This document shows, piece after piece, positions 1-61,600 of a DNA stretch of 64,000 bases. Each line of letters begins with the position of its first letter. Position 1 is the stretch's first letter. The position numbers were made by a program, and so were the translations under genes. The DNA is taken from NCBI GenBank assembly GCA_016748015.1, contig JAAOMT010000495.1, forward strand, positions 20,446-84,445, given 5' to 3'. This stretch comes from Geosiphon pyriformis uo1. Lineage: Eukaryota; Fungi; Glomeromycota. The notes beneath the pieces were generated by a model. It searched no databases and had not been told where the DNA came from. It saw only the letters and a program-made list of their open reading frames with translations.

Positions 1-499
1 TAAACTTCTCATCTTCAGACGCTCGCTTTAACAGCCGATACATCTCGTAAAGTTTCCAAAACTTCTTTGGCAGTAGATTGATTCTCGGAATTGAATTCTA
101 AGTTTTAAAACAAAATAAAATTATTTATAAGTAAAAAATTATGCCTCGAAAATTTGAGTTTTCATATAGAAAAAAATGATTGACATAATTTAACATGATT
201 TTATAATTCATTTCAATTTAGAAATAAAGCCTTTATAATTAATGATACTTGGAATTAAATTGAAGCTAAAAAAAAACACAATATATTCACAATTTAATCA
301 AAAATTAACAATAACAGACAATTGGATTTACATTTAAAATCCTCATTTTTTAACCAATTTGCAAAATTAATTTTTTTAAAAAATTCAAAATTTGTTTCTA
401 ACTATTCTTAATTCTAAATGCAAGAATAATTTTTGATTCATGAAGGGTAAATTTTGTTTTCTAACTAAGAGATATGAACAAAAAGTCGGAAATAAGATT

Positions 500-3400
500 T
501 ATAAATGGTATTTAATCTATTTCAAAAAAATTTCAAAATTTCAAATAATTATTATATATTACTTTTTATTTTGTAAAATAATTAATATTAATTGTAATTA
601 AGAATTTTTTGAAATATTTTTTATTAATAAATTTAATAAATTAATAATTAGCATATAATTAAAATTATGCATTATTGATAGTTTCTTTTAAATAATTTTT
701 TTACGAAAATCAGTTTAAATTATTGTTATAAATAACACTTTTATTTTATAATAATTAAACTGACAAAATTTGATCTAAAAACAAAAACAAAAAATACTAA
801 AAATTATTATTGATAAAAGTAAAAGTTTTTTCTGCTGAATTTCTAATAAAATAAATATTAATTATGTAATTAAAATAATTAAGTGAAAAATAATTGAATA
901 AAAATAATTAACTAGAAAATAAAATTAATTAATTAAACAGTTTAATTATTTGAAAAAAAAATTAATTAAATAATTTTTAATTAAAAATGATATTGATAAT
1001 TCAAAAAAAAATAACTAAGAAAATAATAATCTAAAAAATATTTTTGATTAATTAAAAAAATAAAAGATTAACAAAAAAAGTATTATTAATTCTGAAAAAA
1101 CAAGAAAATAATTAAAACATAATTTATATATTTATAATATCTATATGTTTTTAAAAACCACCTTTTTTTATGTACATTAATAATATATTAAAAGAAAAAA
1201 TAGTTTTTTTCTAATTCACAAAAAAAAATTATAATACTATTTTTGTTTATTAAAACTGATTAACATGTCAAAACAGCTATAATAGCATCAAAAGATTTAA
1301 AATATATTATAATATATTGCTAAATACTAACAGATTTTAAAAACATTTTTAAAACTTCATTATAAATACTAAAAGCTATTATAAAATTAATTATAAATAT
1401 ATCTAAAAGCATATTATACAAAGCAATAACAGAAACAAAATCAGATATCAAAAATTTAACAATTTTAAAAGTAAAAAAAAGACAAAATTAGCAAACTCAG
1501 CTTAAAATACAGCATTCAAAAAAGCTTATAAAGCAAACTTTATACAACTTTATATTGTTTTTAAACACAAATTTAGTATTAATAAATTTATATATAAACT
1601 AAAATACAGTCTTAATAAAAAGTAATTTGATCTTAAAGAAAATATTAAGTATTAAAATAGTAGATACTTATTCAATAAATTTTTAATAACTAAAAATAAA
1701 TATCTAAGTATTACTAAAAGCAATATTAAAAAACAAAAAAAAATTAATTAACTTAGTTTCTATTTGATTAGTCTAATTATTAAGATTAGATAACTTGATA
1801 GATTAAATATTTAAAAATATGTTCAAAAACATAATTTATTTTATTTCCAAGACCAATAAAAATTAACCAAAAATTGACATATCAAAAAAGATAGTCAAGA
1901 GTTAATTTAGACGAAAAATAACCAATTTATTTCTATTGTTATTGCTTAAAACAAAAAACTTTTTCTTATTTATAGTTATAATAAAACTAAGTATTGTAAT
2001 TAATATTGATAATACAGAATTAAAAAAAAAGCCAAAAGAAATAGAAAAACTAAAAATTTATTTTTCACGAAAAAAAAATGCTTTAAGACACTAAAATTAA
2101 CAGAAATACCAAAAAAAAATTTTAGTATTTCAAAAAAGTTGGTATTAAACATAACAAAGATATAGAAAATTTAATTTTTAACTAGTTTAGTTTTTATGGT
2201 TATTTAAGCAGTAGTAAAAAAAAACCAAAAAAAAAACAATTGAGTTATTAACTCTTTATTAAAAACTCTAAGTCTCTTGAAAAAAACAAAGATTATGTCA
2301 GAACTAATTCAATTAGACTTTTTAAAAAACTTTAAAAGAAAACAAATTTCTAGTTAAAAATAAAAAAGATGCTTTTAAAACATTAAAAAATTATTTAATT
2401 ATAATTTTATTTAAAAAAAATATCTTTACAAAATACTATTAAGCAATTTTAATAATTATTAATATATTATTTAAAAAAACAGTATTATGATTTAAAAATT
2501 TAATAAAAATTATAAAAATAATATAAATTATTCAATTATAAAATATTACAGTTAGAATTTTAAAATAATAATAAAGTATATAGTAATAATTACTAAATAC
2601 TGTTAATAACTAATACTATTTTATAATTGTAGCAAATATTATATTATAATACCAATAAATGCTATTTAGAATATCAAATATAAAATATATAATGTGTTAT
2701 TTTATAAAACTACAAACATATAATGTTATTATAAAACAAAAACATAAACAATAGATAAAATAAAACAGAATATTTATAAATTTATCTATTGAAATTTTGA
2801 TGTTTTAAATAATATTATTTAAAAAACAAGCAAATTTTTAATTTTACTAAAAACAATACAAAATTGTTATAAATTATTAAAATTTCAAAAATAACAGAAT
2901 CACATTATTTTGTATAATATTCAAATTAATTAAATAATATTTTATTAATTATTAAAGTTTTTTAAATTGAATTTTTTAAATATAAGCTTATTGATATAAT
3001 TTATGTCTTATATTAATGGTTTTAGAATTTAATATCAGATATCAATTATATTTTTCAGTAAATATTTATTTAATATATTTTACAAAAATTAACAATTATA
3101 CAAATCAAAAAAAATAATAAAAAAATAAAAAAAAAATAAAAAAGTAGTTTTATTGTATTAATTTTTGCTTTAAATAAATTTTTGATCTGAATATAAATAT
3201 ATTTTTACAGCTTGAAAAAGTTTTGTTTATATATTTTTAAAAATAAATTAATAATTAAGTTATTAATCAAGTCAATATTACATCAATAACTATTTTTAAA
3301 AATAAAGTAATTAACTAATAACATTAATAATTAAAACATATAACTAATTATAACTAAGTAAATAAATAATACTAAAAATTAAAAGTTTTAATTATATTAT

Positions 3401-6400
3401 TATTTTTCCAAAAAAATTGAGCTTCAGCAAAATAAATTTATCTAAAAAAAGTTTTGAAGTTTTTATTTTAAAGCTAATTGATTGGTTGAAATTTTTAGCT
3501 AACAAAATATATAAAAGTTGTAATAATATTAGTTTTGTATTCTAGAGATCAAAATTTTATATAAGTATTTTAGTTTTTTTTGTAATAGTTAAAACTTTTA
3601 AAACATCTAAATATATAATATTTAAGATTTTTACTTGTATTTCTGAAGTTGTTTTCTTTAAAAGCTTTATATTTTCAATAACTTTATCAAGTCTTTGATA
3701 ATATTTTAGTTGTCTTTTATATAAAAATTTCTTATGGATAAGACTTTTTTTATTGTTTTTTTAAGTATGTAAAAAAGAAAAATGTTTTAACAGTTATGTA
3801 TTTAAATATATATTTCTCTATTTTATTGTCTTTTTGTGACAGTTTTTTGAAAGTTAATAACAGAGTTATTCTAATTTTATCTTTATTTATTATTTGTTTT
3901 CTAATTGTAAGCAAAACATTTGGGTAATTTTTTGTCCAATATTTGTAAATTGTAAAAAAGACGTTTTACATATTTTGATTGAAAAATATTTTTTAACGTT
4001 GATTGAAAATATTTTTTCATGTTGATTAAAAATATGTCTGTTTTAGGATTAAAATAACTTTTTTATAATTGGTTTAGTGTTTTATTAATAAATATTATAG
4101 ATATGATAACAACTGATAATTAATTGGGTTTTTTGTGAAATTTTTTTATTTATGTATTATAAACAAATTAATCATTAAATATTGTTCTATATTGGTTCTA
4201 TAAGATATAAAATCTATTATTTAATACTTTGTTAATTATAAATAATTTTTTCTATTAACTTAAAAATTTGTTATCAAAAATTTTGTCTTAATCTAATTGC
4301 TATTTAAGAACTAAATTACCAATACTTAAAGAAAGTGTTTTATATTTTTTTTTCTTAAGTCATTTTTAAAATGTTCTTATCTTTTTATAAACAATTATTT
4401 GAATTTTTATTAAAGAGTCTAATATTGTTTTAAGTTTTTGTTGTAAGATATTTTTATAATTAAGTTTAGTTATTTTTTCAAAAAAGTATTGTCTTAATAT
4501 TAGTTTCAATAAATAATATTGTCACATATTATAGAATAAATAAAAAAAGTTTATAGCCAGTTATTTTATTATTTACTGTTCTATAAACAAAGAGTATTAA
4601 GAACAAAATTTTGTTTTATAAATTTGTTTTTTTACTGGTTTTTTCTAAAGTTTTGCAAAGTGTTTAATTAAAATATTCTACTAATGTATTGATTTATGAA
4701 TGATAAAAGAAGAAAAATTTGTAATATATTTTAAGTTTCTTCAAAGTTTTTTATCAATGAGCTAAAAAATCTTTTTTTTTATTTGGAAGTAGTTTTTGAG
4801 AGCATCTATATTTACATATAAATTTTTCATAAATGAAGTTAACAATTAAAATAACTGTTTAATCTGATATAACTTTTGTTTTTATCTATTTTGTTAAGTA
4901 ATTTGTTGTTGTTATAATGTATCTATTTTTATTAGAGATAATTGTTAAAAATCTAACAACATTAATTCTAATTTTATCGAAAAGTTAATTAACAGAAATT
5001 ATATAAATGGTTTCTTTTTAATTGAACTTGTCTTTTTATTAATAGGTTTTACAAGTTTTAATATATATTCTGTTATATTTTTTTCTAAGATCAGTTAATA
5101 GTATCTTGTTAATGTCTTTTTGAATTGTTTTTGTTTTTCCAAAATGTTCTGCTAAAAATCTAGTATGCATACACTCAGCAGAAAAAAGTCATGGGACACT
5201 TTATTATTTCTTTAATAACTTTTTATTTTATTTAATACTTAATAACTAGTTGGTCTACTCTCCTTTTTAATATATTCTTCAATACGTTTAGATGCACTAG
5301 TAACAAAATTTAGATAATTATTTCGTGGAATTGCTTGCCATTTTTCTTGTAACACAATGAATAATTTGTGATTATTTTCAGGGCGTGGATTTCATTTTTT
5401 GAGCTGTTTTTGTAAATAATCCCATAAATGCTCTATTGGATTCAAATCAGGTGATTGTGCTGGCTATTTAGAAAGTAAATTGAGCCATCCAAGTCTTTCC
5501 TTTGAACTTTGAATTTTTGAATATTCATGTTTATCAAAAAAAATCCTGAAAAATTTTATGTTGATAAAAAAATGTAAAGTGTCCCATGACTTTTTTTTGC
5601 CGAGTGTATGATCTAATATTAGCATTTGACTACAATAGATTGGACTTTACTGTAAATTGTAAGTTTATAAAACTTATAATCAAAAAAAGTTTTGGCTTTT
5701 TTCAATCATTTATTTCCAACAATTATGGTATAATCTTTTACTTTTGATACTTTTATATTAGTTTTAATATACATATTATTAATTTGAATGAGAACAGTTT
5801 TGATAATTTCTAAATTTTTTTTTGTTTTTATGAATACTAGTTATAAGTTTAGCTAATAGTTTATTTACTTTTTTTTTAATTGTATCTAAAAAATACTGGG
5901 CTATAATATTGATTGATAGATCACTATTTAATATTAGATCTATAAAATATTCGGCTATTTGTGCTTTATAAATAAGAAAAATAACATTATTACTAAGAGC
6001 TAATATTGTTTATTAAAAATATTTGTTGTTTTTGTGCTGTTTTTTTTGGGTATTAAAAATTTTTGAAGATTTTTTCAGAATTATAGATAAGTTATATGCT
6101 AATCAATAATAATATAAGCAGATATTTCTATTAGATCTTTGATTATTGAATAGAAGTCTGATTTTTAAACTATTTTTGATGGTTTTAGCATTTTAACTTT
6201 AAAGTTTTATTTTGGTTATTAGATATTAAGTATTTGTATTAAAGTTCAGATTAAAATCAATTTTCTGTTTCTTAAATCTAATATAATTTGATAATTTACT
6301 ACTGTTTTTTGTAATTTTATGTTATCATTTGTTAAGTTAAAATTAAATAAAAGATTTTTTTTGGCTTGTATTTTTATTCTTAAAAAATACTTTTACCAGT

Positions 6401-9300
6401 TTAAAAACTAATATTCTATGGCTTTAATTAAAAAAATTTTCAAAGAAGTTTATATAAATCTGATTAGTATTTGAATTAAAAGCTTGATTATTATTGTTTT
6501 TATTATTTAATTGATTGTTGTTTCTTAGATTTGGGAAAAATATTGAAGAATTATTACAATTTTGTATTATATAATTAGTATTTTTATATCAATAACAAAC
6601 TGAAAAATTTTGGTCTTTAAGTTTCAGATTATATTAAGACTGTTAAGACTAATTATAATAAAATTAATATTAAAGTTTTTAAAATATTTGGTATTTTTGT
6701 ACTATTTTGGTTAATAGTTTTAAAAATCTGGTAAAGTTTGTTGTTAATTTATTTATTAATTGTTTATTAAGATCTTGAATATAAACAATAAATAATATAA
6801 CAGCTATTTGAAAAAAAAAAGCTAGAACAGTTATTAAAACAAAAACATGTTTTTTAAATGTATTTATTTTTTATTAATTAACTTATTTCTACTATTGTAT
6901 TTAATATGAAATTATTTTTAATAATAAAAAGAAACTATAAAGCATAAAATAAATTTATTTTTTTATTTAATTTTTTTTGTATTTACATATTTTATTAACT
7001 TTTGAATTGCTTTAATATATTTAGTAATTATTTTTCTGAGTCTTGTGCTTTTTTTAGTTTTATTTTCTATTTAAATATTAATATTGTGGTACAAAATTTT
7101 TTTAGATTAGGTGATAAAAGAAGTTGTATTTTGACTAGCATTTTTAAGTAATTATTGAATAATTTATTGAATTGTTTTTCTGATAGATTTTTGTATAAAT
7201 TATATAACAAAAAATTCTTAAAAGTATTTTTCAACTATTTAAAATTTATAATTGTTGTTATATTAATTTGCTATAGCAGTTTTTTTAAAGTTTTTAAGTC
7301 ATTTAATAAGGTCTTAAAAGTTTTTTTAAAACAAAAATAAAGAAAATATGTTTTAACAACTTAAAATAATCTGAATGTTTTAAAAAATTAATAATATATC
7401 TTTTTTATTTTAAGTTATAATAAGTGTTAATATACATAATAAAAAGTTTGAATTATTTAAAAAAAAGCTGTTTAATAGCTTTTTTTGTTTTCAGTTTTTA
7501 AAAAGTTTTTAATTTGTTGATATGTAATTATCTAATTGTAAATTTGTTGATTTATAATTTCAAATTTAAAGAGAAGTTGATTAAAAATAACTAAAAATAT
7601 TAATTGGTTAATATAATTATTTTTGGTTTTAAAATTTGTATTTATATTAAAAAATCATTTTTTTGTTAAAATTTATTTGTAATAGCAAAAAAAATTAAAC
7701 AGTATTAAAGTTAAATAAAAAGCCAAAAATATTAATTAAATATAATTTTTTATTTGTTATATAAATTGTTAAAAATAAAGTAAATTAAAAAATATTAAAA
7801 TTTCAGTTTTTATAAATATATAAACAATTTTTTTTTTATTTTTTGAATTTTTGAATTCAACAAATTTTTTATAAGTTTTTTAATTAATATATTTTTTTAA
7901 TTTATATTTGTTATTAGAATTTTTAATAATAATTTGCTAAAAATTTAATTTACAATTTAATTAATTATAAATTATATACATAACCAGTTAATTAGACTTA
8001 TATTAAAAATAATTTTTTTGTATTCATATTTTGTATTTATTTGTTAAATTTTATATTAAAAGTTTACAAATTCCAAAAACTGATAATTTACTTAAAGTAT
8101 TTTTATTTATTAAAGACTTAATAATATTAATATTTATTATTATTTAAAAAATATATGCCAAAAGTTTTTAAACATACTAATTACTATTTTATTAATATTT
8201 TTAATCCGTACTATAAATTTTAAATACAACAAACTAGATAGTATTTTAAATATATAAAATTTGATTAACAATTATTTAATAATATTCTTATTTAACTTTA
8301 ATAATTTTTATTTAATACAAATTTTTTAAAGTACCAGTTTAATAATAATATTATTAAAAAAATTTTAAAACTTGTAAATAATAATGACTTGTTTTTTTAT
8401 TACTTAATAAATTATAGCCCAATTACTATTTATGTACATAAAATTTAAAATTTTTATAATAAACACAGTTCATGTATTTTCTGTATGTGATCAGTTATTC
8501 ATAACTTATTTTTAACATAATTGATTATGTTCTTGAATAATTATATTATTAATTTTTAAAACTGTATCATTAAAAAAAAATTAATCAAATTTGTTTTTAA
8601 AAATGTTTTTTTAAACAATAATTTTCTTTTAATTTAACAAACAAAGAATTTTAATACTGATTTTTTATTATAATAAAAGCAAAGTTAACTACAACAAAAA
8701 TAAAAATAAAAATTATAACAAATTTTATAATTTTGAAAATTCAACAAATTTAATAAATTAAATTTTGGTGACAGCATTTAAAAAATTTTGAAATTAATAT
8801 TGTTTTTTAATAATTAATTTAATATTAATAAAACCATCTAAAAACTAAAAATACGATTTTAATATAAATTTATTTGATTTTAAACATACATTTAACACTT
8901 AAATAAAGATTACTTATTCAAAAAACTTTTAAAATATATTAATAATAATTTCAATAATACTAAGTTTAAAATTTTAAAAGAATTTTTTTTTAAAAATTAC
9001 AAAAATATTGCTGCTAAAATTAATGCCATTTTGAAAGTTGATATAAGATTAATAAAAAAAAACAGTAGTTCAGCTACTAGTTTGATATTAAAAGTCTTAA
9101 AACTTTTTGTGATAATATTAATAATATGAATAAAAAATAAAAGCAAAATAATAATAGAAAAATTGAAAAATAATAAAAAATAATTAAAAAATAATAAAAA
9201 ATAAATATTAAAATTAACAAACTTTATAATCAATTTTGATAAAAAAAAATTAAATAAAAAATAGTAATAATTTCAAAAATTTAATAAATAAAAGATTTTA
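500..9300. other. Extremely AT-rich, CpG-poor block, probably heavily decayed transposon DNA
   Basis: No credible ORFs (only low-complexity F/I/K/L/N frames); C and G visibly depleted relative to the gene array; hosts a younger Tc1 insertion. Ancestral element cannot be identified by eye. Confidence 0.5.
5172..5606 (-). mobile_element. Non-autonomous Tc1/mariner deletion derivative with 32-bp TIRs and TA target duplication
   Basis: Left TIR CACTCAGCAGAAAAAAGTCATGGGACACTTTA (5172-5203); right TIR reverse complement CACTCGGCAAAAAAAAGTCATGGGACACTTTA (5575-5606), 2 mismatches; TA on both sides; internal minus-strand frame K*PAQSPDLNPIEHLWDYLQKQL...WQAIP...RPTSY* is a Tc1 transposase C-terminus. 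Confidence 0.93.
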
Positions 9301-11960
9301 ATAACCAGTGTTGACAAACACGATTAAAAGTAACAGATTATGACAAAAAAGTTACTGTTTTCAAGCAATAGCTCTAAAATTTGAAATTGATGCACCAATT
9401 TTTTTATTTAAATATAATTTTTTCATCCAAAATCAATTTATAATTTTTGACAACCTTTACCAATTAAAATAATAATAATAATAATAATATATATTATAAT
9501 ATAAAGTATCTATTTATCGTTTTTCAAGTAAAAAAATTTCAAATTTTTTAATTGCAAGAAAAACCAATATATGATATATTTTCTTCGGATTGATAAAATC
9601 ATTTTTTAAAATTATTATATCTTGAAAAAATATCACATTACCTGTTCGAATATCTTGAACTTAATAAAAAAAACCATCAAGAAAATTTGTTTCTTTATAA
9701 CTATAATAGCAAATAAATAATCAATTTTAATTTTTAAAAAACCAAAAAAATATCATTCTTATTTTCATAAATTCTCTAAGTATTTTAAATGAATGAATGA
9801 ATTAATGAATAAATAAATAAATAAATAAATAAATAAATATTATTTTATTTTATTAAGATTACACAATTTTCAATGAAAAGATAGTCTTTGTCTTAAAAGT
9901 ATTAAAAGTTTAAATGAAAAAGGTTTGGAATTTAGATAAACGAATAAATTGAATTATGTGATATTTAACACTCAAAGGAATCAGATTAAAATAATTTGTG
10001 GCAATATTTATCAGTGTAACCAATTATCTTAAAATCAAAGTTTTCTCATGGATTTAATCGACCAAATCTTTACATATACGTCCTTGATTTTCATTGGATT
10101 CCCTTATGTGTGTTAAACTTATCGTTAAAAGCTGATTTAAAAAAGTTTTAAAAATAATTTTGGAGGCTAATGGAATGTTGAAACCTCTCAAAAAATTAAG
10201 ATTTTAAACAAAGAAAAAATTTTCTAAAATTTTCTCAGGCCAAAAAAGCAATTGGTCAATAAATCGATACTTATTCTCATCATTTTTGATCTGCTACTTT
10301 TTAATATTTTGTTACGATAATCGCTTTTTTTGATGATGAATTTTCCAGTTAACGAAAATCTCGTGAAATTAGCCATAAACTTATCTTTCGGATCTAAGTT
10401 GAGAATAATCAGATCGGAGGTCAAGTAACAAATGTGTTTTCCATTTTCCAAGTAAAAAAAAAAATTCAATATTTCTCCGACCCCCCCTTAATGTAACAGA
10501 TCTGAGTTACTACTATATTTTAGAGTTTCATAGAATGACGCCATTGATCTGAGGATATACAATGATTTGCTCCCTCCCAAAGTTTGTTTCTTTTTTTTTT
10601 CATTCAATTTTACTAAATAATATTTCGCACACTATTTAAAGTATTTGAAGCATGTTTAATATTTCCTCTTTTAAGCAAAATTTCAATATCCTTTAAGGTA
10701 CTAGATCAAAAATGTACTTTTTAAAATTTTACTTAGATTTCCCACGATTCTTCAAATTTTTCCGGTCAGTTTTGTAATGATTTATATTTCACAAGATTAA
10801 AATGAACTAACATATTGAATATTTGATTCAATTTCTGATTGAAATTTCTTGTTAACACAAAATACCGTGAGAATTGACACCGAGAAGAATATTAATTTTT
10901 ATTTTCTTTTACAAGTTTGGCTATTTTTATTTAATTCCTGATTTGATAATATTTGAGATGCATATCAGCAAATCTATTAAAGCTGGTTTATTCTGGAGCA
11001 AAAGGAGAAAATTTAATAATCTTTTAATCATTTCTTTTTATAGAAATCAATTTTGTGGGGTAAAGTTTTTCGATTATCCTTTTATTTATCAGGGATCAGA
11101 TATAATTGTTGATTGAATACAAAGACATCCTGATTGTGAGTTAAAAAAATTCTTTGTTTTCCCCGCGTCAATTTGTCAATTCAAAAATTTAAGGTGTTTT
11201 TTTTTTTTTTTTTTTTATGAACAAATCAATTAAGGAAATACATTTTTAGTAATAATTCAAAAAAAAAAATTTGATAGTACAATCAAAGTTTCTCATTTAA
11301 AAATTCCCGGAAAAAAATGTTCAGAAATAATTGTGGGAAAATTCAAAAAACTTTCTTTCAAAGTATTTTCTTTTATTAATCTGAAGCATCTTGGTATTAT
11401 TATTACCCTGCTTCAAAATAATCAACAGTTCAGCTTGAATACAGATCATTAATATAAATTTCATGATAAATTGAATTTACTAAATTCTAAAGGTGCATTT
11501 CTAAAAAAAAATTATGGGGCTTTGGGGGAATTTAACCTAATCAACGTTTATCAAAGATTTCTGTGATGAAAATGACGTACGCATTATCGATAAAAAACTT
11601 TTTATTCTTACCCACGGGAACGACGATATTATTATTATTATTATTTTTTATTATTTTCATGTTCTTTTAAAAATTCAGCAAAGCACTTTTAGTAATTCGA
11701 TAGAATAATCCTGAAGATCTCTAATTTAATACCAGATTTGTGATGAGATGTGAGAACAAATTAAATTTAAATTTACTTTCATATCAGATATAAAGAAATG
11801 ATGATCGAGATTGTAATTCTACTATTTCCCGGGTAAAAAGTTTTTGAAAAATAATTAATATAAAAAGAATTCTCATTCAAAAGGTACAAGTAGAGAGAAT
11901 AATTAAAGCTCAAATTGAATACATTTAGTACCATTATTATTATCTCCTTAAAAAACTACA

Positions 11961-13416: not shown

Positions 13417-14523
13417 TTATAATTTTTGAATTTTTCAATCGGTTTTTAACATTCTAGTTAGGGTCATTGTTTATAGACTATTTTAAGTATATTTTAGAAA
13501 ATTAGTTTCTGGAAATTTCTATATAGATTTTGAATGATTATATTTAAAAAGGGAATATTTTCCCCAAAAGTATATATATTTTTATTACCTAGCTCCGATA
13601 AATATCATAAACTTATTATTTGGTCTATTGACTTAAAAATAAACTCGATAATTTTTACCTGTCAATTATTAACAATATAGCTTTTAGGTTTTCTTGATAA
13701 TTATGAAATTTTCCAAATATAATTTTACATTTAATAAAAATATATAGCGTAATCATAAGCAAGTTTCAACAGCTAAAGAAAATACTTGAAAAAAAATCAT
13801 TATAATTTAAAAGGTTTAGAATTTTTTTTTTTGGTAAACATATACATTTTAAGATTATTTTATTTTAATGATTCTAAAAACAAATAAAGCAAATGGAAAA
13901 AAATAAAAAAATAACTTTACAGGTTTATGTAAATTTGAATTTTTAATAATAAAAATTATACGCTATTAATCTAAAATTGTTCATCATAAATGAATGATGT
14001 AATTTGAGAAAAATAGTCTTATATATATATGTATATATAAATATATCATGAAAGTTTATTGCATCATCATTTTTAGTTATGGTTTTTTGATTTTAAAAGG
14101 ATGTCCCAAGAAGTTAGGAAAAAAGATTTTTTTTAGAAAACTTTTTATACAATTACATTTTTAACCCATATTCTGGATTTATGTGAAAAGAGAGATAAGA
14201 AAGTTGAAGACCTAATAGTAAAAAAATGATTTAACAATATACTTCAAGAAAAAATCTCAAATTGAGGTTTTAGAATGATTTAGTGCTAGCATTATTGTAC
14301 ATAAATTATTTTATTAGCACATGATCATTGTTGCACTATTTCCTTGAGAATGCCGCTAGAAAAACCCGTTAAAAAAAAAAATAATGATTCGAACCTGTGT
14401 GTAATGTGTAATACCAAATAAGCACGGTGTACGCCGAAATGATCATCTTTTTTCCTATTTATAAAACAAATGCCTCTAAACAACCACTCTCTTCTCTAAA
14501 GCCACATTCTTCGAATATCTAAA

Positions 14524-16584
14524 ATGTTGACGACTGATGGAGCAAACCCTTTCGGTCAGGGAATCCCATTTCATCGAGGGAAACCAATTAAATTTTTACA
14601 TTTTGAGGATGGAAGAATAAAATTAAATCCAGATGCTATCGACATTTTAATGTCAATCGAAGGGAATATTGGAGTTGTTTCTGTCGGTAAGTAACCTGTT
14701 TTTACGAATCATCCATGTTGAATTTGGCCTAAAGTTTTATTGACCCTTGAATATCTTAAAGTGGGCAAAAAACACACTGGAAAATCTCACTTTGCAAATA
14801 TCTTGCATGGTCGTCACGATGGCTTTGAAATGGGTAGCAAATTAAAAGGAACAACTGAAGGTGTCTTCATGTGGGATACTCCATTTCAACATGAAGAAGG
14901 TTTGAAAGTCCTAGTTCTTGATTTCGAAGGCTTCGACGAAGATTCCTTATCAGAAACAACGGAGTGGCACAAAAAATTGTTCATTCTTGCATTATCTATT
15001 TCTACGAATATTGTATATACGGTCGACAAATTTCCAACATCCCACACTATCGACCAATTATTGGCGGCAAACAATTTGATGGAGATGATTTCAAAAGAAA
15101 ACGATGACAATTACAATGTTGATATTGGGAAGAGTTTGATTTTCTTATTGAAAGATTGTATTTTTGAGACAAATGAAATGAATGAATATTTCCAAGAAAA
15201 GCTCGACAAGAAATTGGCTGCAGATAGTAAGTTGGTAGTTTATTAACTCATCTTTCCCAAACTTGAATAAATTTTCAAACTAATAAATTGATTCTCAAAT
15301 TTAGGTTATAACTCATTCGCAGATACTTTTTCAGAAGTAGAAGTTTTTGGAATTCCGCCTCCAGGATTAGGTTTAGCTGACCTACGAAAAATGAATAAAG
15401 TTATGACTAATCGTTTCGATAAGGATTATATTGTCGCACTTACTAAAGCCGTCAACGGAGTTTTATCAAATATCGGTCAAAAAAATAACCCAGCCGAAGG
15501 AACTTCAGCCAAGAAATTTTTGGCTAGGATGGATCTCACCTTGAATTACCTAAATAATCAACTCCAACAAAAGATTTCTCCCATTATTCCTATTATTGAT
15601 TATGAGTTTACAAAAGATGTTGAAGCTATCTGGAATCAATTGATTGAGCCTGGATTACAGGAAGGAACTCCCTTTGTGAGTAATACATTTGATGTTTTGA
15701 AATTTATGTCGTTCTCTCTCTCTCTCCCTGATTATTATATAACTGGATTACTCGAATTTAGGAAAATGAATTTATTCTTAAGAACAAATTATTCGAATTC
15801 TACGCGGAATTAACCCAACTTGATCATGAAGATATTTTCGTTGTCGACAAATTATTTGCTAAGAAAGAGAAATTGGCAATACAAAGATGGAAATCATTTC
15901 TTCCCAAAAATCTTACGTGAGTCTAATTAGAAATTAGGTTCTCTGAATTCAATCATTTCACTGACTAGTAATAACATTCCAAACTTTAAAATTCTTTTAC
16001 TTCAGATGGATTGTAGATTTTAAAGTGAATTCTTCAGATTTTCGCGGTTTACCTTGGCCGGCACCTGGTTGGAAATGGGATAAAACTGATTTAAATCAGG
16101 ATCACGGTGGAAAATTTATTCACATTGGATATAAGTTGGCAAACGCTGATGATGATGAATACATATCTAAAAAGACAACTGGATTTTCTTGGTAAAATTT
16201 TTTGTCGTTATTTCAAAAATTAGTTATTCCATGAAAACTTCCTAATAATTAAATTTGTATTTTAGGAATCCGAAGGGGAAATTTTGGACTCATTCAGATT
16301 GTGTCACTGCTCTTTCATATCTTGCTTATGATGAACCGCTTACGACCAAACCATCTGGCTGGGACTTTTGGAGTCCTCAAGATTTATCTGAAGGGACTGG
16401 TGGAAAGTATATCTATCTAGTTTGGAATGTATGTGGTGACAAGCCTCCAGTTTTAGAAATCTATTTCGAATTTTCGGATGAAAGTAAGCCACCTGTTAAA
16501 GAAGGATGGATCGCAGCTGACCAAGATTTATGTGCTGGGTCAGGAGGAACGTTTCTTTGGGGATATTACCGTACTCTCGCTTGA
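14524..16584 (+). CDS. GBP/atlastin (GB1/RHD3-type) GTPase fused to a C-terminal MABP-like beta-prism (552 aa)
   Basis: Exons 14524-14686, 14762-15226, 15305-15675, 15762-15916, 16006-16191, 16266-16584 (1659 nt). KLNPDAIDILMSI, VVSVVGKKHTGKSHFAN (G1), GFEMGSKLKGTTEGVFMW (G2), LVLDFEG (G3), FLLKD (G4). C-terminal repeats DLNQDHGGKFIHIGY, DLSEGTGGKYIYLVW, DLCAGSGGTFLWGYY. Confidence 0.88.
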
Positions 16585-17039
16585 AAAAAGGTTTAATTTC
16601 CAAGGGTAGCAAACCAGATTTCCTCATTACATATAGCTTTTATGTTCGAAATGAATATCGAAATTAGTTTTTTTGTCATTTCGTTATTGTATTCTGAATA
16701 TCTTGAATTGAATTGCAACTTAAAAAGTGTGATTTAAAATTTCTATTAGCCATATTTTATTTCGTATAATGAATTTAAAAGTGATACAATAAAAAAATTT
16801 TGACTTGGGGAAATGGTCATCCAGATTTTCTATTGGCCTATTCAGAGCATCCCGTGACAAGATAACCAAAGGTTTATTTGAATTAAACATCTAATGTGAA
16901 TTTGTTTAAAATTTAATTTTTAGAAATAAACTAATTAACAATAAGCTAGCTATTTTGAATGAAATAAAAGTTGTTTAAAATGTATCCTCTTATCAAAGAA
17001 ACTAATTAAGCTTTTTTTATGATGGATTTACTAAGAAAT

Positions 17040-52549: not shown

Positions 52550-55500
52550 CAAAAAAAAAGTTCTTATTACGTGTACATCCCACAAGAATTTTCGGAATAA
52601 ATAAAATCTTTGTTTTGACTTTCTAACTTCAATATGATTTAATATAATAAAGTTTTACCAATCTATGCTCTAGTGAGATAATATCAATAATTTCTGATTA
52701 AATTCAATAATCAGATCATCAAAATTACTATTTGTATATATTTGTTCCCCCTCCCCCCAATGCGCAGCATACAGCCTTTTTATTATCTTCAAATTAAAAT
52801 CGGATAATCTCTTGTTTGTTTATTCTCATGATCTCTAAGAAGAGCTTAAGATAAATCTTTGATTATTTGGTTGGTTTTACTTTAATTTACCCTTTTAATC
52901 AGCCATTTTCCCCTTTAAAAAGCAAAATTCTTTTACAAATCTTAAAAATGAACTTTAAAAGCTCCATTCTTTTATACCATTTAACGCATCGAATAAGAGG
53001 GGATAAGTGTAATCAGCAAACTCTTTTCTTTAGAATTTTCATGGTTTTTATTGCATTTTTAGCCTTTACTGGGTATTCTAATAATGCAACACCTATATTA
53101 AACGGTAACCTAAATAATACCCAAGTGGATCCAACGTATTTCTTTCCAGATATTGGCAGTATCACAGATTCTTTTATAAGTGAAGTTCTCGCATTAGATA
53201 TCAATAAAAATGATAAGGCTTATCAAAGCCAGATTTTTGCGAAAACTACCGATGGCCTTGGATCCATCAACGTTGACCAAGTCCAGAATTCTCCAAGTGA
53301 TCCAAACAACGATTTAATCACTATTATTGCTGACGATGATTCATCCCTTGAAATTCCTAACGATGATCAATTCACTGGAATTAACGATCAATTTGCAACA
53401 AATACATTAAGTTCAATGGATTCGAGTTTACCAACTTTAGAGAATGAACCCGACAAAGAGCTAGGGCCAGAGCTTCCTCCCCTAGGATTTGATATTAATA
53501 CGGAACTAGAAACTAGAGAACCTGTAGTAAATTCTAATTCATTTACTAGCAACTTCGGAGATCTCTTCCGAAATAATTGGGACAAAGAAAAAATTACAGT
53601 CGAAAGTTGGAGTGATACTGCCAAACACATCAAATTTAATGCCAGATTAGCAAATGCAGCTTACTGTAATAATTCCAAGGTGTCAATTCGGTATTTTGGT
53701 AAATTGAATTTCACATCTTTTCTTCTTACACTTCTCACAAAAAAATTTTCTTGACAATTTTTTTATCTCTTAGATAATCATAATTCTGAGGCACAAATTC
53801 TTTTTGCTGCGTTTGCTGGTGTTGGATTTGAGTTGCGGAACTTTGTAGAAACCAAAGATATAGCTCAAGTGCAATATCCTTTTTGGGATGATGAAAAGCT
53901 TTATCATCAAAAATATTATCCTTCTGGATGGGACAAACAAAAGGTTCACAAAGGAATTTATAACCTATGGCGACCAGCACAGGAAAAATTTATAGAAAAA
54001 ATGGAATCTATGTCTGAATTGAATAATGCCATTATTCAGTTGGTTGGGCATGGACTTGGTGGAGGTACCACATCAGAAATTCTCATATTTTTCAAATAAT
54101 TCTTATCAAAACTATTTCTCACCCTTGAAATATTGATTTGCAAAAGCATATGCCTTATTTGCGGGGTTGGCCTTTCTATCAAAGCATGAAGACCGAAAGA
54201 TGACAATTTATACTTTTGGAGAACCAAGACTAGGAAACAAGCACTTTGCTGGACTTATCAACAATCTAATCAAAGAAAAACGACTTGATGTTTTCCGAGG
54301 AACAACACCCGGTGATCCAATCATTCATTGGCCAAATTTACCCAATTTAGATTTTATAGCCGATTCAAAAGGTCAAATCCCATCGAATATTCGCTACCAG
54401 CATCATCAAAAGGAGTTTATGTATGTGTCAGAAACAGATAGATTATATGAATGTAAAATTCCTACATCAGGAGAAGAAAACAAAGTAAGCATTTTTTTTC
54501 TACTAGTATTTCGATTGATGTTTACTCTAATATAATCTTATTCTTGAACTCCACTATTTTTCTATAATATTAAGGACTGTGCNNNNNNNNNNNNNNNNNN
54601 NNCAAAAAAAAAGTTCTTATTACGTGTACATCCCACAAGAATTTTCGGAATAAATAAAATCTTTGTTTTGACTTTCTAACTTCAATATGATTTAATATAA
54701 TAAAGTTTTACCAATCTATGCTCTAGTGAGATAATATCAATAATTTCTGATTAAATTCAATAATCAGATCATCAAAATTACTATTTGTATATATTTGTTC
54801 CCCCTCCCCCCAATGCGCAGCATACAGCCTTTTTATTATCTTCAAATTAAAATCGGATAATCTCTTGTTTGTTTATTCTCATGATCTCTAAGAAGAGCTT
54901 AAGATAAATCTTTGATTATTTGGTTGGTTTTACTTTAATTTACCCTTTTAATCAGCCATTTTCCCCTTTAAAAAGCAAAATTCTTTTACAAATCTTAAAA
55001 ATGAACTTTAAAAGCTCCATTCTTTTATACCATTTAACGCATCGAATAAGAGGGGATAAGTGTAATCAGCAAACTCTTTTCTTTAGAATTTTCATGGTTT
55101 TTATTGCATTTTTAGCCTTTACTGGGTATTCTAATAATGCAACACCTATATTAAACGGTAACCTAAATAATACCCAAGTGGATCCAACGTATTTCTTTCC
55201 AGATATTGGCAGTATCACAGATTCTTTTATAAGTGAAGTTCTCGCATTAGATATCAATAAAAATGATAAGGCTTATCAAAGCCAGATTTTTGCGAAAACT
55301 ACCGATGGCCTTGGATCCATCAACGTTGACCAAGTCCAGAATTCTCCAAGTGATCCAAACAACGATTTAATCACTATTATTGCTGACGATGATTCATCCC
55401 TTGAAATTCCTAACGATGATCAATTCACTGGAATTAACGATCAATTTGCAACAAATACATTAAGTTCAATGGATTCGAGTTTACCAACTTTAGAGAATGA

Positions 55501-56635
55501 ACCCGACAAAGAGCTAGGGCCAGAGCTTCCTCCCCTAGGATTTGATATTAATACGGAACTAGAAACTAGAGAACCTGTAGTAAATTCTAATTCATTTACT
55601 AGCAACTTCGGAGATCTCTTCCGAAATAATTGGGACAAAGAAAAAATTACAGTCGAAAGTTGGAGTGATACTGCCAAACACATCAAATTTAATGCCAGAT
55701 TAGCAAATGCAGCTTACTGTAATAATTCCAAGGTGTCAATTCGGTATTTTGGTAAATTGAATTTCACATCTTTTCTTCTTACACTTCTCACAAAAAAATT
55801 TTCTTGACAATTTTTTTATCTCTTAGATAATCATAATTCTGAGGCACAAATTCTTTTTGCTGCGTTTGCTGGTGTTGGATTTGAGTTGCGGAACTTTGTA
55901 GAAACCAAAGATATAGCTCAAGTGCAATATCCTTTTTGGGATGATGAAAAGCTTTATCATCAAAAATATTATCCTTCTGGATGGGACAAACAAAAGGTTC
56001 ACAAAGGAATTTATAACCTATGGCGACCAGCACAGGAAAAATTTATAGAAAAAATGGAATCTATGTCTGAATTGAATAATGCCATTATTCAGTTGGTTGG
56101 GCATGGACTTGGTGGAGGTACCACATCAGAAATTCTCATATTTTTCAAATAATTCTTATCAAAACTATTTCTCACCCTTGAAATATTGATTTGCAAAAGC
56201 ATATGCCTTATTTGCGGGGTTGGCCTTTCTATCAAAGCATGAAGACCGAAAGATGACAATTTATACTTTTGGAGAACCAAGACTAGGAAACAAGCACTTT
56301 GCTGGACTTATCAACAATCTAATCAAAGAAAAACGACTTGATGTTTTCCGAGGAACAACACCCGGTGATCCAATCATTCATTGGCCAAATTTACCCAATT
56401 TAGATTTTATAGCCGATTCAAAAGGTCAAATCCCATCGAATATTCGCTACCAGCATCATCAAAAGGAGTTTATGTATGTGTCAGAAACAGATAGATTATA
56501 TGAATGTAAAATTCCTACATCAGGAGAAGAAAACAAAGTAAGCATTTTTTTTCTACTAGTATTTCGATTGATGTTTACTCTAATATAATCTTATTCTTGA
56601 ACTCCACTATTTTTCTATAATATTAAGGACTGTGC
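52550..56635 (+). repeat. Apparently identical 2033-bp direct duplication separated only by an N gap
   Basis: 52550-54582 matches 54603-56635 (offset 2053); all ORF translations are identical; N run at 54583-54602. Confidence 0.9.
52948..54582 (+). CDS. Duplicate of copy 10, truncated at the gap (probably an assembly artefact)
   Basis: Exons 52948-53698, 53774-54064, 54147-54484, and 54575 to the gap; same sequence as the gene at 55001-56747. Confidence 0.55.
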
Positions 56636-56747: not shown

Positions 56748-58699
56748 AAAAAAGGTTTTACATATTTACTTAATTGAAATTGTGCAACCTATTTCACAAT
56801 ATTAATATTTTACTAGCTAACGTGAGTTTTTTAAAATTTGCCGATGATGAATTAAAAAATTGTGATTTTGGAATGTAACATCTAATATTTTATTTCCAAT
56901 ATATATGTGAACTGATATGATTAGGACACTATGGGGTCTTTAAAGCTTTAATATTAGATTCTCAATCTTCCAAATTTAAAAGCAATATTTTTTTTCTTAT
57001 CTCCTAATTGGAAAACTGGAGATAAATTTCAAACACCCTTTTTTTCCGAATTTATTTTGGTTTCTTTTTTTTCTTTACAAACATAATAACATCATCACAA
57101 CAGCATGAATAAAATGTTTTTAAAACAATGTAACTAACCTTTTGTCACATTACCAAGTAAATCCAAATAATAAAAATCGTTAACCCCGAAGAGTTACCAC
57201 ATTTTCCGAAATTAAATAATCTACTTTTCGTGAGATTAGAAGATCACGAGGCTAAAATCAAGTGTTTTACATCACTTAATGATATTATAGAAGGAAATTT
57301 TACGCTCAAAAATTAATTTTGGTCTCACACAAAAGGAAATAAATACATGTAATATATAAATGTGATGAGAAAATTTTTCTTGCTTTATAAAAATAAGTAA
57401 AAGATATTAATTATTCTCAGGATCGACTTGGCGATATTTAAAAAGAATAACCTGGGCTTTGGTTAGGGTTTTGGCACTTAATAGGAAACACTTTTGAACT
57501 TTTTGTTTTGTTTTGTTTTGTTTTGTTTTGTTTTGATTTCTTTAAAAAGACTGATTTTAAAAAAAATATGTATGTTGATCAGTTCGAGCTTTTCAATTTT
57601 CTCGATATTTTATTGAATAAGATATTATGTAATAGAATTTTCAAAAGCAAAAATTTTTTAAAGGTGTTGTCTCTACCTAATCCTAGAATTCTTTAGGCAA
57701 GATATATCAAAGAATTTGACTCAAAAGTAGGAGGTAAGATATTTAAAGTCGTATTTAGACTTATTATTCGAACGAACATTGCATATACATGTATAACGAG
57801 CTGATTCCCCTTATAATAGAAATAATAAGGTAATTATTTTCACAAAATTCATCTAGTTTTCTGATGATTGAGAAAGATACTCGCTGCTATCTATGTTTTA
57901 GCAACAAAAATATTAATATCGCTTCTTCAAATTTGCAGCATAGATGTATCATTGTTTCATTAATACTTCCTTTCAAGGTTTTTTAAAAAAGTCAGCAAAA
58001 GAGATGGTTTTCCCCAGACAATTGATATTGGTTTGCTATTCTTTCATGACTACTTGCGTTTCAGCTCAAGAATATCCAAATTAAACTCACCTCTATTATT
58101 GTAAATATCGCCGTAGAGATACTTTTGAACATGCAGAACGTGTAGGAAAATGTGTCATCTAGCCCAAAGGGAGAATTTTATTTGTGAAAACACTAAAATT
58201 AGGCTTCATTGCAATATTATAGTTTTATTAGGCTTATAATGATATGTACCCTTTTAATTATATTTCTCTTATTTAGAAGTCCAAATGTTCAATCGTCTAA
58301 TTATGTATGGTGTGCAAAGCAAGAATTACATGGCTATAAACTGTGTCAATTTGCTTTCTTAAGATAAAAACATTCAAAATTCAAAAATAAGGAAGAAACC
58401 TGCATTTATCGCAAAGGCACATTTCTTATAGGTCAAATAATGTTGACATTTTTACAAATTTGGTAATTTTTCTGCTTTGCTTTCAAAAGAGAAGTTTATG
58501 ATCAAAGTTGTCAATACACTATTCTCATGACTAATTGAGTCCAAAGTGGAACAATTTTTGATGCATTATATAGCAAAGCTTTTATTTATATCTTTATAAT
58601 AAAAATACACTACACATCTCAATAGATTGCAACATAGTTTTAACTCTAAATCATTATAGATGGATATTTATTTGTCACATTTGCAATTAGTTATTTACT

Positions 58700-61600
58700 T
58701 CTTTACTACTTTTGTAGTATTTATAAAAAACAGCAAAATAAATTGAAAGTAGAAAAAAAGACTAATACTTTCAATAAATTAATATTTAGTCTTCTATCAC
58801 ATTTCATGGTATTAAAATTGTTAATTCTAACGAAGAAATAGTTCAACCTAAAATTGTTCAGATCTTGAATTTAGAAATCTAACCTGACAGAATTCGAATG
58901 TAAAAAAAAACGATGTTATTAATTGAAAAAAACTGAATTTATTCTTTAAATTTTAATTTTTTTGAAAAATCAGCAACTATAATTTAAAACTGATAACATT
59001 AATTAAATTACTTACTTATTTAATCTGTTCATTTGTTAAATTTTTCTTGTTTGATTTTTATTGTTGTATATAACTATTTTTTGTGCTTTTGTAAAATTGT
59101 TAAAATTTATCTTGTTATTTATTGTATAAACAATTACATATTCTTTGTTAAAAAAAACTAAATAATATATTCAAGTTTATTTTAACAGTAATACAAAACA
59201 ATTTAAAAAATATTTTTTTACTTTATCTGATTTGTTATTCAGTTAAACAATAATCTAGTAAATAATTTTAAAATTTCTGAAATGGTTTTTTAATAAACAT
59301 ATAGTTAAAACTTATTTAGTCTATTCTATATAATTTTTTAATTAAGCTTATTTTAAAACCAATTCTAAAAAGAAAAACAATTATATGAATTATTTATTTA
59401 TTTATTTAGTTATAATTAATTTTAAAACTTTTTTATTTTTAAACTATTTTTAAGCACATTAAATACTTTATCAAAAAACTGTTAATTAAATAATAATAAA
59501 TATAAGTTTTAAATTTTTAAACAATACTTTTAAAATTCTTTATTTATATAATTATTTCAAAATTTATTTTTGATTTCAAAATAAAATATGAACTAAAAAT
59601 AATGTATTCAAGATTCTAACAAAATTTTATTAAATATGAAAAATTTATTTGAAATTTTTTAAACAAATGAACACTAAAATAATTAGATTAATAAATAAAA
59701 AAAATAATTTTTTTATTTTATGTTTTTTGGTTTTAAAAAATTAATAAATGTATTTTAAAAATATAATTTACTAATTGTTTTTATTTTTGCTTTTTTTTTA
59801 CCAATATTTATTATTTTTTTACAAAATTTAAATAAACAATTAATAAATAAATTAACTGCCAATTTTGTTTATCTTCTAAAATTATTGATTTAAGCTATAT
59901 GTAAAAAACCAAAAACTTAAAAATTCCAAATATAGACTTCAGTATAACCAACAAAAAAAACTGTTTTATAATTTTTAATAACAAAATTATAAGATTATAA
60001 AATTATTTTTAGTACTTTAATTACTAAGTTTTTTAAAATTTTCAAAATTGTTAAAATTTCTTCATTTAATAATTAATAAAATAATAGTTTTTTTGTTATT
60101 ATTATTTATTTTATTTTAGATTTTATTATAAACTTTGTAAGTTTATTATTTTTTATAAAAAACTTGTTAAACTAGTTTTTACAATATTTATTAATAATAA
60201 CGAGCTTTTAAATTATGTTAAAGCTAATTAATATTAACAAAAATATTATTATTATTTAAAAATATTTTTGTTTTAAAAGTGTTTTTTGTTTTTCTTTTTA
60301 TAATTGAAAAAAGTTATTTTCTGCATTTTTGTAATTTTTTCAATTGTTATACATGTAAAAATTAGTAATTTTTGTTTTTAATTTATTATAATATTGTATA
60401 GAAATTAAGAAATATTTTATTTATAGGTTATTTTTTTGTTATATGTGTATTGTTTAGTTTATTAAAAAAATTTTGCATTGAAAAATATATTAGTTTCTGT
60501 TTTTTGAAGAGTTATAATTAATATAAAAAGATATATTTTGTGTAAAAATTCAAATTTAGATTATTTTCAAGTTAAATAATTTTACTTTTAATAATTATAA
60601 TAAAAAATATATATTATAAAAATATATATCTAAAAAAAATAGATATGTTATATATTTTTAAAATAATATTAATACAATCAATTTTTTACTTTTTAAACAA
60701 TAAATGCATAACGTATTTGATTTATTACAAAAATTGAGAACTAATTAGTTTAATTTTGAAAAAATAAAACAAATATAATTTATAATAGCTAAACAGAAAA
60801 AATTCTTTACAAAAAAAAATTTTTGATTTGAATTATCTCAATTGTATTGATTCTGCTAAAATAAAAAAAATACAAAAGCTTAAATAAATTTAAAGAAATT
60901 TTAATTTTTTAAATTAGTTTTACATTATTAAAATTTTGTTAAAGAATTTTTAACCAAAATTTTTTAAAATTTAACTTGTTATTAAACCAATTTTGAAACA
61001 ATGTAATTTAAATTAATCTTTACATTAATACAAGTTTTCGAATTAAATAATGTTTTATTTTAAAAATAGAAGCAATAAAGAATACACTATTATTTAATTA
61101 AGCAAAAGTTTTTTTCTTTATAAAAATATTTAATTATTAAACAAAAGTGCTTTATAATAATTGGTTTACTAATTATTAGTGAAAATATTTTTTGGATGCA
61201 AAATTTACTTTTATGATTAATTATTAAGTCTTAATCTGGCTGTACAATAAAAAAACTTAAATATTGACAAATTATTTGCGAAATAATTTACTTAAACAAT
61301 TATAATTATAAATCATAACATTATAAAAACAAATTATTAAAATACTAATGTTTTTTAATTTCATAATTTAATAAAAACAATAAAATAAAAAAATACATAT
61401 ATAATTATAAAATAATTAATTTAAATTTTAATAAACATAAATGTTTTTATACTAATAAAAAATAAACCCATATTGTAAATATATCTAAATACTAAATACA
61501 AGAACAAAAAATTAACATAAAAAAAGTAAAAATGATAATAAAAAATAATAAAAAACAAAAACATTGAAAATTTTTTACAGAATATTATAAAAATATGTAT

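Follow-up and report, generated by a model that had tools for sequence, protein, structure and literature searches.

The stretch of DNA analyzed here (hereafter the window) comprises 64,000 nucleotides (nt) from the 128-Mb genome of Geosiphon pyriformis (contig G000:C618), and the gene that is the subject of this work is located on its + strand at positions 14524-16584. The protein encoded by this gene, 552 amino acids (aa) in length, combines an N-terminal GTPase (G) domain of the GBP type, a short helical region and a C-terminal part that is predicted to fold as a three-repeat beta-prism of the kind found in MABP and MACPF proteins. This pairing is a real, expressed and lineage-restricted architecture made from two known modules, of which we have found no prior description. 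Information regarding the structure of the gene, its two modules, their distribution and their possible function is discussed below.

Gene structure and transcript evidence

Reading of the sequence gives six exons with canonical GT..AG borders and a combined length of 1659 nt, viz. 552 codons and TGA (Table 1). The translation of each exon agrees without mismatch with a protein of 552 aa in the database (P0001; NCBI "hypothetical protein G9A89_008626 [Geosiphon pyriformis]"), and four of the five introns are confirmed by complementary DNA (cDNA), which bears out the six-exon, 552-aa frame that an earlier note on this DNA had put forward. The searches described below were carried out exon by exon, and the whole-protein analyses were performed on the database entry, which matches the exon translations exactly.

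The transcript evidence comes from one public run that contains 63% of the words of the stretch; its type is recorded ambiguously, and it behaves as cDNA because its contigs cover no intron. A contig of 1134 nt spans positions 14498-15858, with introns 1, 2, and 3 excised precisely at the predicted GT..AG sites, and a second contig of 547 nt spans positions 16014-16634, with intron 5 excised. Spliced contigs are thus present on either side of the domain joint, and both halves of the gene are therefore transcribed and spliced. The three single-base mismatches between these contigs and the window indicate another allele or isolate. Preceding position 14498 in the first contig are 12 non-genomic letters ending in GGGG, which resemble the tail of a template-switch adaptor, and 14498 may therefore be the true start of the transcript.

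Read from the sequence, the GTPase and the prism are parts of one expressed nuclear gene, in which the joint of exons 4 and 5 is supported indirectly. Comparison of the gene models shows that the orthologs from two species of Ambispora (P0151 and P0152) share all five intron positions with the Geosiphon gene, the one at the domain joint among them. The frame is open across this phase-2 joint in the Geosiphon protein and in both Ambispora proteins, and the residues around it (KN.. on the exon 4 side and.IVDFKVNSSDFRGLPWP on the exon 5 side) are conserved. It could be argued that two adjacent genes, one for a GTPase and the other for a stand-alone MABP protein, were joined in error by the gene predictions for each of the three species, since the cDNA contigs end at 15858 and resume at 16014, leaving the junction uncovered, since stand-alone MABP proteins are known in related fungi, and since retention of intron 4 would terminate the GTPase frame immediately (TGA). 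However, no Met is found in residues 286-552, so that exons 5 and 6 offer a stand-alone prism no start codon in frame, and intron 4, at 89 nt and phase 2, is too short to accommodate the terminator of one gene and the promoter of the next. The second cDNA contig, which begins at 16014, also stops short of intron 4, and the open frame over the joint, the flanking residues conserved in three species (KN.. followed by.IVDFKVNSSDFRG) and the identical intron position all argue against a merger, which we regard as very improbable.

Table 1. Features of the gene under study, sequence motifs of its G domain, and lipase-like copies in the window. Positions are those of the window unless given as residues of the protein.
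Feature	Position	Strand	Description
5' untranslated region	14498..14523	+	cDNA contig begins 26 nt before ATG
Exon 1	14524..14686	+	aa 1-54 and 1 nt; GBP N-terminal strand-helix up to P-loop; ATG at 14524; GT donor at 14687 confirmed by spliced contig
Exon 2	14762..15226	+	aa 55-210; core of G domain with P-loop, switch I Thr, DFEG, and LLKD; both borders confirmed by cDNA
Exon 3	15305..15675	+	aa 210-333; end of G domain (~aa 265) and first helices of the stalk remnant; borders confirmed by cDNA
Exon 4	15762..15916	+	aa 334-385; last helices of the short helical region; cDNA covers 15762-15858 only; donor GT at 15917 from sequence
Intron 4	15917..16005	+	89 nt, phase 2, exactly at the GTPase/beta-prism boundary; GT..AG; sole intron unbridged by cDNA contigs
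Exon 5	16006..16191	+	aa 385-447; first prism repeat (DLN) and clade-specific Lys/aromatic-rich insertion; cDNA from 16014, alignment, structure model
Exon 6	16266..16584	+	aa 447-552 and TGA; second and third prism repeats (DLS, DLC); intron 5 confirmed by cDNA
3' untranslated region	16585..16634	+	at least 50 nt; second cDNA contig extends to 16634
P-loop	residues 56-63		GKKHTGKS; present, fits GxxxxGKS
Switch I Thr	Thr86		present; aligns to GBP1 Thr75
G3	residues 108-111		DFEG; present
G4			LLKD; Asp kept, Lys where fungal relatives have Arg (LLRD); pairwise alignment with GBP1 unreliable here
GBP1 Arg48 (arginine finger)	His59		replaced; Gln or His in Ambispora
GBP1 Ser73			replaced by Gly
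Lipase motif sites	12721, 19995, 23573, 26881, 30503, 34765, 40122, 46634, 49983, 54046, 56099		TGHGxGGG or TGHAIGGG

The GBP-type G domain and the helical region

The Pfam GBP profile (PF02263) matches residues 30-265 of the whole protein over profile positions 2-258 of 264, with 78 bits against a cut-off of 21.1 (E 8.7e-22), at the N-terminal location where the earlier note expected it on the spliced protein. Exon 2 alone matches the same profile (E 5e-14) as well as the structures of human GBP1, GBP2, and GBP5 (E ~1e-10 to 1e-11), and in a sequence search of the PDB the best solved relatives are human GBP1 (E 1.6e-18) and then, more weakly, GBP2 and GBP5. The gene had been described as encoding a "GBP/atlastin-family" GTPase, and only the first half of this description stands: membership of the atlastin/Sey1 group was rejected, as RHD3_GTPase, with 25.4 bits, falls short of its cut-off of 42.4, none of the atlastin structures was matched and transmembrane hairpins are absent.

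In an alignment with fungal relatives, the P-loop, Thr86, and residues D108, E110, and G111 are invariant, and with its GTP-binding motifs intact (Table 1) the protein is expected to bind nucleotide. The conventional GBP-like proteins of Glomeromycotina all keep an Arg in the P-loop (G[SA][YF]RRGKS), as does the conventional paralog in Geosiphon. A two-copy complex prediction for residues 15-300 gave a score of 0.08, which speaks neither for nor against dimerization. In the A. gerdemannii ortholog (P0152), a repetitive acidic insertion composed of EEL/RESF/DEN-type units is present in the G domain at about residues 200-260; the other two orthologs do not have it.

The G domain is followed by ~120 mostly helical residues (266-385, in a full-length model of low confidence), which align to the start of the stalk in conventional relatives; PF02841, the C-terminal helical domain of GBPs, was unmatched in a Pfam scan of the protein. 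The statement of the earlier note that the protein has neither a C-terminal CaaX box nor a transmembrane hairpin agrees with our analyses, since its C-terminus reads ...YYRTLA and no transmembrane segment is predicted in it (maximum Kyte-Doolittle value over 19-residue windows, 1.53). No signal peptide was found in the protein either, and a protein with no signal peptide, hydrophobic segment or CaaX box should therefore be cytosolic.

The C-terminal beta-prism

The C-terminal part of the protein is, as modeled, a three-repeat type-I beta-prism of the MABP/MACPF type. The three repeats of the form G(W)xxxxxDL(N/S/C)xxxGGx(F/Y)(I/L)xxx(Y/W) that the earlier note had recognized are located at GWKWDKTDLNQDHGGKFIHIGY, GWDFWSPQDLSEGTGGKYIYLVW, and GWIAADQDLCAGSGGTFLWGYY, the second of them having six residues, not five, between GW and DL. 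Exon 6 alone identifies, in the PDB, the C-terminal prism of Mpf2Ba1, an insecticidal protein of the MACPF class (E 2.9e-4). An exhaustive phmmer search over 1.84 billion representatives found 234 relatives of the prism, and a family profile built from the alignment of 40 of these matches all three repeats of the Mpf2Ba1 prism (E 1.2e-30), which confirms the repeats as far more than a chance resemblance.

An AlphaFold2 model of residues 385-552 based on the same 40-sequence alignment is all-beta, with a mean predicted local distance difference test score (pLDDT) of 88.3 and a predicted template modeling score of 0.83. The top four matches of this model in a Foldseek search of the PDB are Mpf2Ba1 (twice), Plu-MACPF (2qp2) and the MABP domain of human MVB12B (3tow), for which VIA-align gives Z scores of 19.4, 14.3, and 11.3, respectively, with 127-144 residues aligned and model residues 1-168 spanned. 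The P2 domain of perforin-2 has a Z score of 4.9, and nothing unrelated scores above it or exceeds 5. The beta-prism that had been anticipated for the C-terminus was thus recovered by the structure model and the fold search alike.

The profile matches anticipated for the spliced protein were obtained in part: the N-terminal GBP match is direct, and the C-terminal MABP match is obtained through the profile of the relatives and not from Pfam itself. The link to the prism fold was therefore made through the PDB sequence search, the family profile and the structure model. As the Pfam prism models miss the protein, its public annotation presumably carries the GBP domain only, and the record is indeed that of a hypothetical protein with a GBP domain and nothing more. 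The relatives of the prism match PF10240 or PF22356 and bear the UniRef name "MABP domain-containing." The wider prism family includes >660 short proteins from fish, actinomycetes, cyanobacteria, a chytrid and a sponge, many of them with the MABP name in UniRef or a match to PF10240, and elsewhere the same family is joined to diverse partners (viz. astacin proteases, PI-PLC, GDPD phosphodiesterases, a calcineurin-like phosphoesterase, MACPF, a trypsin-like domain and unnamed secreted domains). This range of partner domains marks the prism as a promiscuous targeting module. Following repeat 1 is an insertion of 25-30 residues rich in Lys, Phe, and Trp that is common to the Ambispora proteins; it is the sole low-confidence part of the prism model and a candidate surface loop.

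Distribution and origin of the fusion

Searches of 5.8 and 1.84 billion proteins found the fusion of a GBP domain to the prism only in Geosiphon and two species of Ambispora. A search restricted to the prism, which among proteins of 304-966 aa covered the 84 candidates having short words in common with it, returned the proteins of the same three species only, and no GBP domain was found in the other listed relatives of the prism that were scanned. One ortholog was recovered from each Ambispora species, viz. P0151 from A. leptoticha (586 aa, 49% identity) and P0152 from A. gerdemannii (636 aa, 47% identity), with a coverage of 99-100%. A search of the Geosiphon genome itself found the prism exons once only, and a single conventional paralog of the G domain. 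The identity between Geosiphon and Ambispora amounts to 72% in the prism, 44-47% in the G domain and 32-36% in the helical part, which makes the prism the region of the protein under the strongest constraint.

In a published survey, the architectures recorded for MABP are those of MVB12, DENND4/Crag, VPS13, Sec7, DUB, PNGase, MACPF and solo proteins, and no dynamin-superfamily GTPase is among them (PMC2881412). A full-text literature search, of incomplete coverage, found no paper that pairs GBP with MABP, deals with GBPs in Glomeromycota or treats the architecture of fungal GBPs. Together with the presence of the fusion in only three species, its absence from the survey is in agreement with the earlier impression that this architecture is unfamiliar among characterized proteins.

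In a maximum-likelihood tree, the three fused prisms are found in a clade (support 96/89) together with prisms that stand alone in other Mucoromycota, viz. Cetraspora pellucida and Jimgerdemannia flammicorona, and with secreted proteins, and all members of this clade have in common a DLC third repeat, which marks a fungal subgroup. The fusion was probably formed by exon shuffling, through which a fungal MABP gene of the stand-alone kind became joined to a GBP gene in an ancestor of Geosiphonaceae and Ambisporaceae. Horizontal acquisition of the prism from the Nostoc endosymbiont or another bacterium is most improbable: proteins from Nostoc sp. UHCC 0302 (P0007, plasmid-encoded) and Nostoc sp. 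(P0010) are among the better sequence matches (36-37% identity), but the grouping of the fused prisms with those of Cetraspora and Jimgerdemannia, to the exclusion of P0010, led us to reject a Nostoc origin, and the DLC repeat of the fungal subgroup and the presence of the fusion in Ambispora likewise speak against it. Species of Ambispora are not known to host Nostoc.

The sister group of the fused prisms consists of proteins with a C-terminal prism of the DLC type (P0015, P0023, and P0036, of ~460-470 aa, and P0022 and P0029). The N-terminal domain of these proteins (~300 residues) has no Pfam match, P0015, P0023, and P0036 have a hydrophobic N-terminus resembling a signal peptide, and P0022 resembles the pore-complex protein Aeg-L (9uj0) at a borderline level (E 0.0011). 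The proteins of this group may be pore-formers.

Genomic neighborhood

The window contains 11 class-3-lipase-like copies spread over 12.7-56 kb (Table 1), and the studied gene lies between the first and the second of them. The flanking open reading frames match Pfam Lipase_3. In place of GHSxG, the nucleophile Ser is replaced by Gly in 10 of the copies and by Ala in the remaining one (TGHAIGGG), and all 11 thus lack it, as the designation "pseudo-lipase array" in the earlier note implied. The array is a large tandem family of lipases that are apparently dead. The copies at 54046-54066 and 56099-56119, which are ~2 kb apart, share an identical 25-residue motif context, and this suggests a very recent tandem duplication. 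The G+C content of the genic part of the window is ~27%, and it is extremely low (12-20%) at positions 1-10000 and 58001-62000.

Upstream of the ortholog in A. gerdemannii is a GDSL lipase (L005:872-2241), which belongs to a family distinct from the class-3-like one, and the short contig bearing the A. leptoticha ortholog has no neighbor called. The presence of lipase neighbors in both Geosiphon and A. gerdemannii may be a coincidence; we have seen no evidence of a functional link between the gene and the lipases, and neighborhood in eukaryotes is weak evidence.

Proposed function

We propose that this protein is a cytosolic GBP-family GTPase in which the distal stalk and the lipid anchor have been replaced by a prism carried on two exons of its own, which acts as the membrane-targeting module, and we assign to this reading a probability of about 0.6. 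The prism would recruit the GTPase to a membrane or another lipid-rich surface, and GTP binding would then lead to self-association of the G domains on that surface and to the building of an assembly, as in GBP1 and atlastin. Membrane targeting by the prism may reasonably be inferred from its fold, as this MABP fold is a lipid binder in MVB12B and MPEG1 and, in MACPF toxins, forms the domain nearest the membrane (PMC2881412; PMC6753088; PMC10344926). The suggestion of the earlier note that MABP stands in for the usual membrane module receives circumstantial support from the conventional GBP-like proteins of Glomeromycotina, at least some of which carry a CQIL box or hydrophobic tails at the same end.

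A number of observations weigh against this proposal. No read or contig crosses the junction of exons 4 and 5, where 66 nt of the mRNA are uncovered and the bin 15896-15979 has no depth. The Pfam models MABP/MVB12 (PF10240) and MACPF_b-prism (PF22356) do not match exons 5 and 6, residues 385-552 or the whole protein, even at an E of 0.1. The full-length AlphaFold2 model, made from an alignment of 13 sequences, is poor because most rows of this alignment are without the prism (pLDDT 58.5, falling below 50 at the C-terminus), and it was left out of the fold search and of the analysis of domain arrangement. The three DLN motifs of Mpf2Ba1 hold Mg2+ on the prism axis (PMC10344926), and of this metal-binding motif the repeat cores of the Geosiphon protein (DLN, DLS, and DLC) keep Asp and Leu in three of three cases and Asn in one of three. 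The prism is acidic, with an isoelectric point of 4.85 and 11 Trp in 167 residues, unlike the basic loop of MVB12B, through which its MABP domain reportedly binds acidic lipids (as cited in PMC6753088; PMC10344926). Lastly, the G domain does not possess the arginine finger of the GBP family, having His59 and Gly at the positions of GBP1 Arg48 and Ser73; the loss of this residue suggests altered kinetics of hydrolysis, and cooperative hydrolysis in the style of GBP1 may be weak or absent.

An appreciable, though smaller, likelihood attaches to a more ordinary role, in which the protein is a housekeeping endomembrane GTPase that tethers or remodels endosomes or vacuoles and is not a factor for immunity or control of symbionts. 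Cytosolic eukaryotic MABP domains are tied to trafficking (viz. ESCRT-I MVB12, DENND4/Crag, VPS13, and the Sec7 fusion; PMC2881412), and atlastins, to which GBPs are most closely related within the dynamin superfamily, fuse membranes of the endoplasmic reticulum (PMC8565484). The gene is also single-copy in the search of its own genome, with one ortholog recovered per Ambispora species and a highly conserved prism, a pattern nearer to purifying selection than to the diversification of an arms race; single copy and strong conservation point slightly toward ordinary endomembrane traffic over defense. However, confinement to one fungal order is unusual for core trafficking machinery and Geosiphon also keeps a conventional GBP-like paralog, both of which point toward a specialized role.

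It is rather unlikely that the prism serves instead as a sensor of a ligand (a glycan, a bacterial surface molecule or a protein), with the GTPase reporting or acting on its binding. Beta-prism folds are also found as lectins, as reported for the Vibrio cholerae cytolysin (PMC5825169), and no receptor has yet been identified for the Mpf2Ba1 prism (PMC10344926). The low isoelectric point and the abundance of Trp would suit stacking on sugars better than electrostatic binding to acidic lipids, which makes a glycan or other ligand a live alternative, and its conservation, the highest in the protein, is as expected of a specific ligand site. However, the closest structures are those for which membrane or lipid binding has been described (the MVB12B MABP domain and the MACPF prisms, with the MPEG1 MABP domain at a Z of only 4.9), and no lectin beta-prism is present among the structural matches.

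An immune role for the fusion protein is speculation. In its most specific form, it would make the protein a GTPase of cell-autonomous defense or symbiont surveillance, peculiar to Archaeosporales, with a prism that recognizes a bacterial or symbiosome membrane on which the GBP domain assembles a coat; the target would be the Nostoc symbiosome in Geosiphon or the Mycoplasma-related endobacteria. We consider this improbable; if it held, fungi would possess an equivalent of the coat that GBPs form in animals, built with a targeting device of another kind.

In animals, cell-autonomous immunity depends centrally on GBPs, and relatives with immune roles are known from plants, whereas the GBPs of fungi are essentially unstudied. 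The gene described here shows that the membrane-targeting end of the GBP family is modular, the tip of the stalk and the lipid anchor having been exchanged in one group of early-diverging mycorrhizal fungi for the prism fold with which ESCRT-I, perforin-2 and bacterial MACPF toxins engage membranes. The fusion offers a compact system in which a GBP-type GTPase is tethered by a putative lipid-binding protein domain as opposed to a prenyl group, and since its carriers live with intracellular bacteria, it is a reasonable first candidate for the fungal machinery that handles such residents.

Comparison with known systems

The proteins of the atlastin/Sey1-RHD3 group share a branch of the dynamin superfamily with the Geosiphon protein and likewise place a G domain on a membrane-association device, which in their case consists of transmembrane hairpins, whereas the Geosiphon protein has none. 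The likeness to the vertebrate GBPs (GBP1, GBP2, and GBP5) is closer and comprises a full-length N-terminal GBP-type G domain followed by helices, a GxxxxGKS P-loop, a switch I Thr, a DxEG motif and a G4 motif ending in Asp. The vertebrate proteins differ in having ~300 residues of middle and effector helices, as compared with ~120 without a PF02841 match, in having Arg48 and Ser73 where the Geosiphon protein has His59 and Gly, and, in a subset of GBPs, in ending in a CaaX box where the latter has the prism.

The conventional GBP-like proteins of Glomeromycotina (e.g., P0153-P0159) share with the Geosiphon protein the G-domain subfamily (34-40% identity), an N-terminal FG.GIP..G.PI motif and a stalk that can be aligned over its first helices, and they differ from it by the P-loop Arg, LLRD, a long helical C-terminal region and the absence of a beta-prism. 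P0156 from Acaulospora morrowiae ends in CaaX-like CQIL, and P0158 (A. colombiana) and P0159 (Paraglomus brasilianum) have C-terminal hydrophobic tails (19-residue Kyte-Doolittle maxima of 1.9-2.1). The CQIL box resembles the CNIL box of human GBP2. These features suggest that fungi have a GBP family, so far unstudied, in which the membrane anchor varies. A second GBP-like gene of this conventional kind is present in Geosiphon itself (G000:C708:794718-795137, - strand), with the P-loop GAFRRGKS, LLLRD at G4, a helical continuation and a G domain that is 39% identical.

Among the proteins that carry the prism fold, the match to the P2 domain of MPEG1/perforin-2 is weak (Z 4.9). The MABP domain of MVB12B (3tow), also from a eukaryotic cytosolic protein, has the same three-fold type-I beta-prism (Z 11.3 over 127 of 152 residues), but its identity is ~9%, it has a basic lipid-binding loop where the domain described here is acidic, and its Pfam model PF10240 misses the Geosiphon protein. 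The prisms of the MACPF toxins (Mpf2Ba1, 8b6u/8b6v; Plu-MACPF, 2qp2; PF22356) are the best match in both sequence and structure (Z 19.4 and 14.3), and the repeat signature GW...DLN.G.GG..IYL is common to them and the Geosiphon protein. In comparison with these toxin prisms, two of the three Asn ligands are replaced in Geosiphon, by Ser and Cys, and 25-30 residues are inserted after repeat 1; the partner of the prism in the toxins is a secreted pore-former, whereas in Geosiphon it is a putatively cytosolic GTPase.

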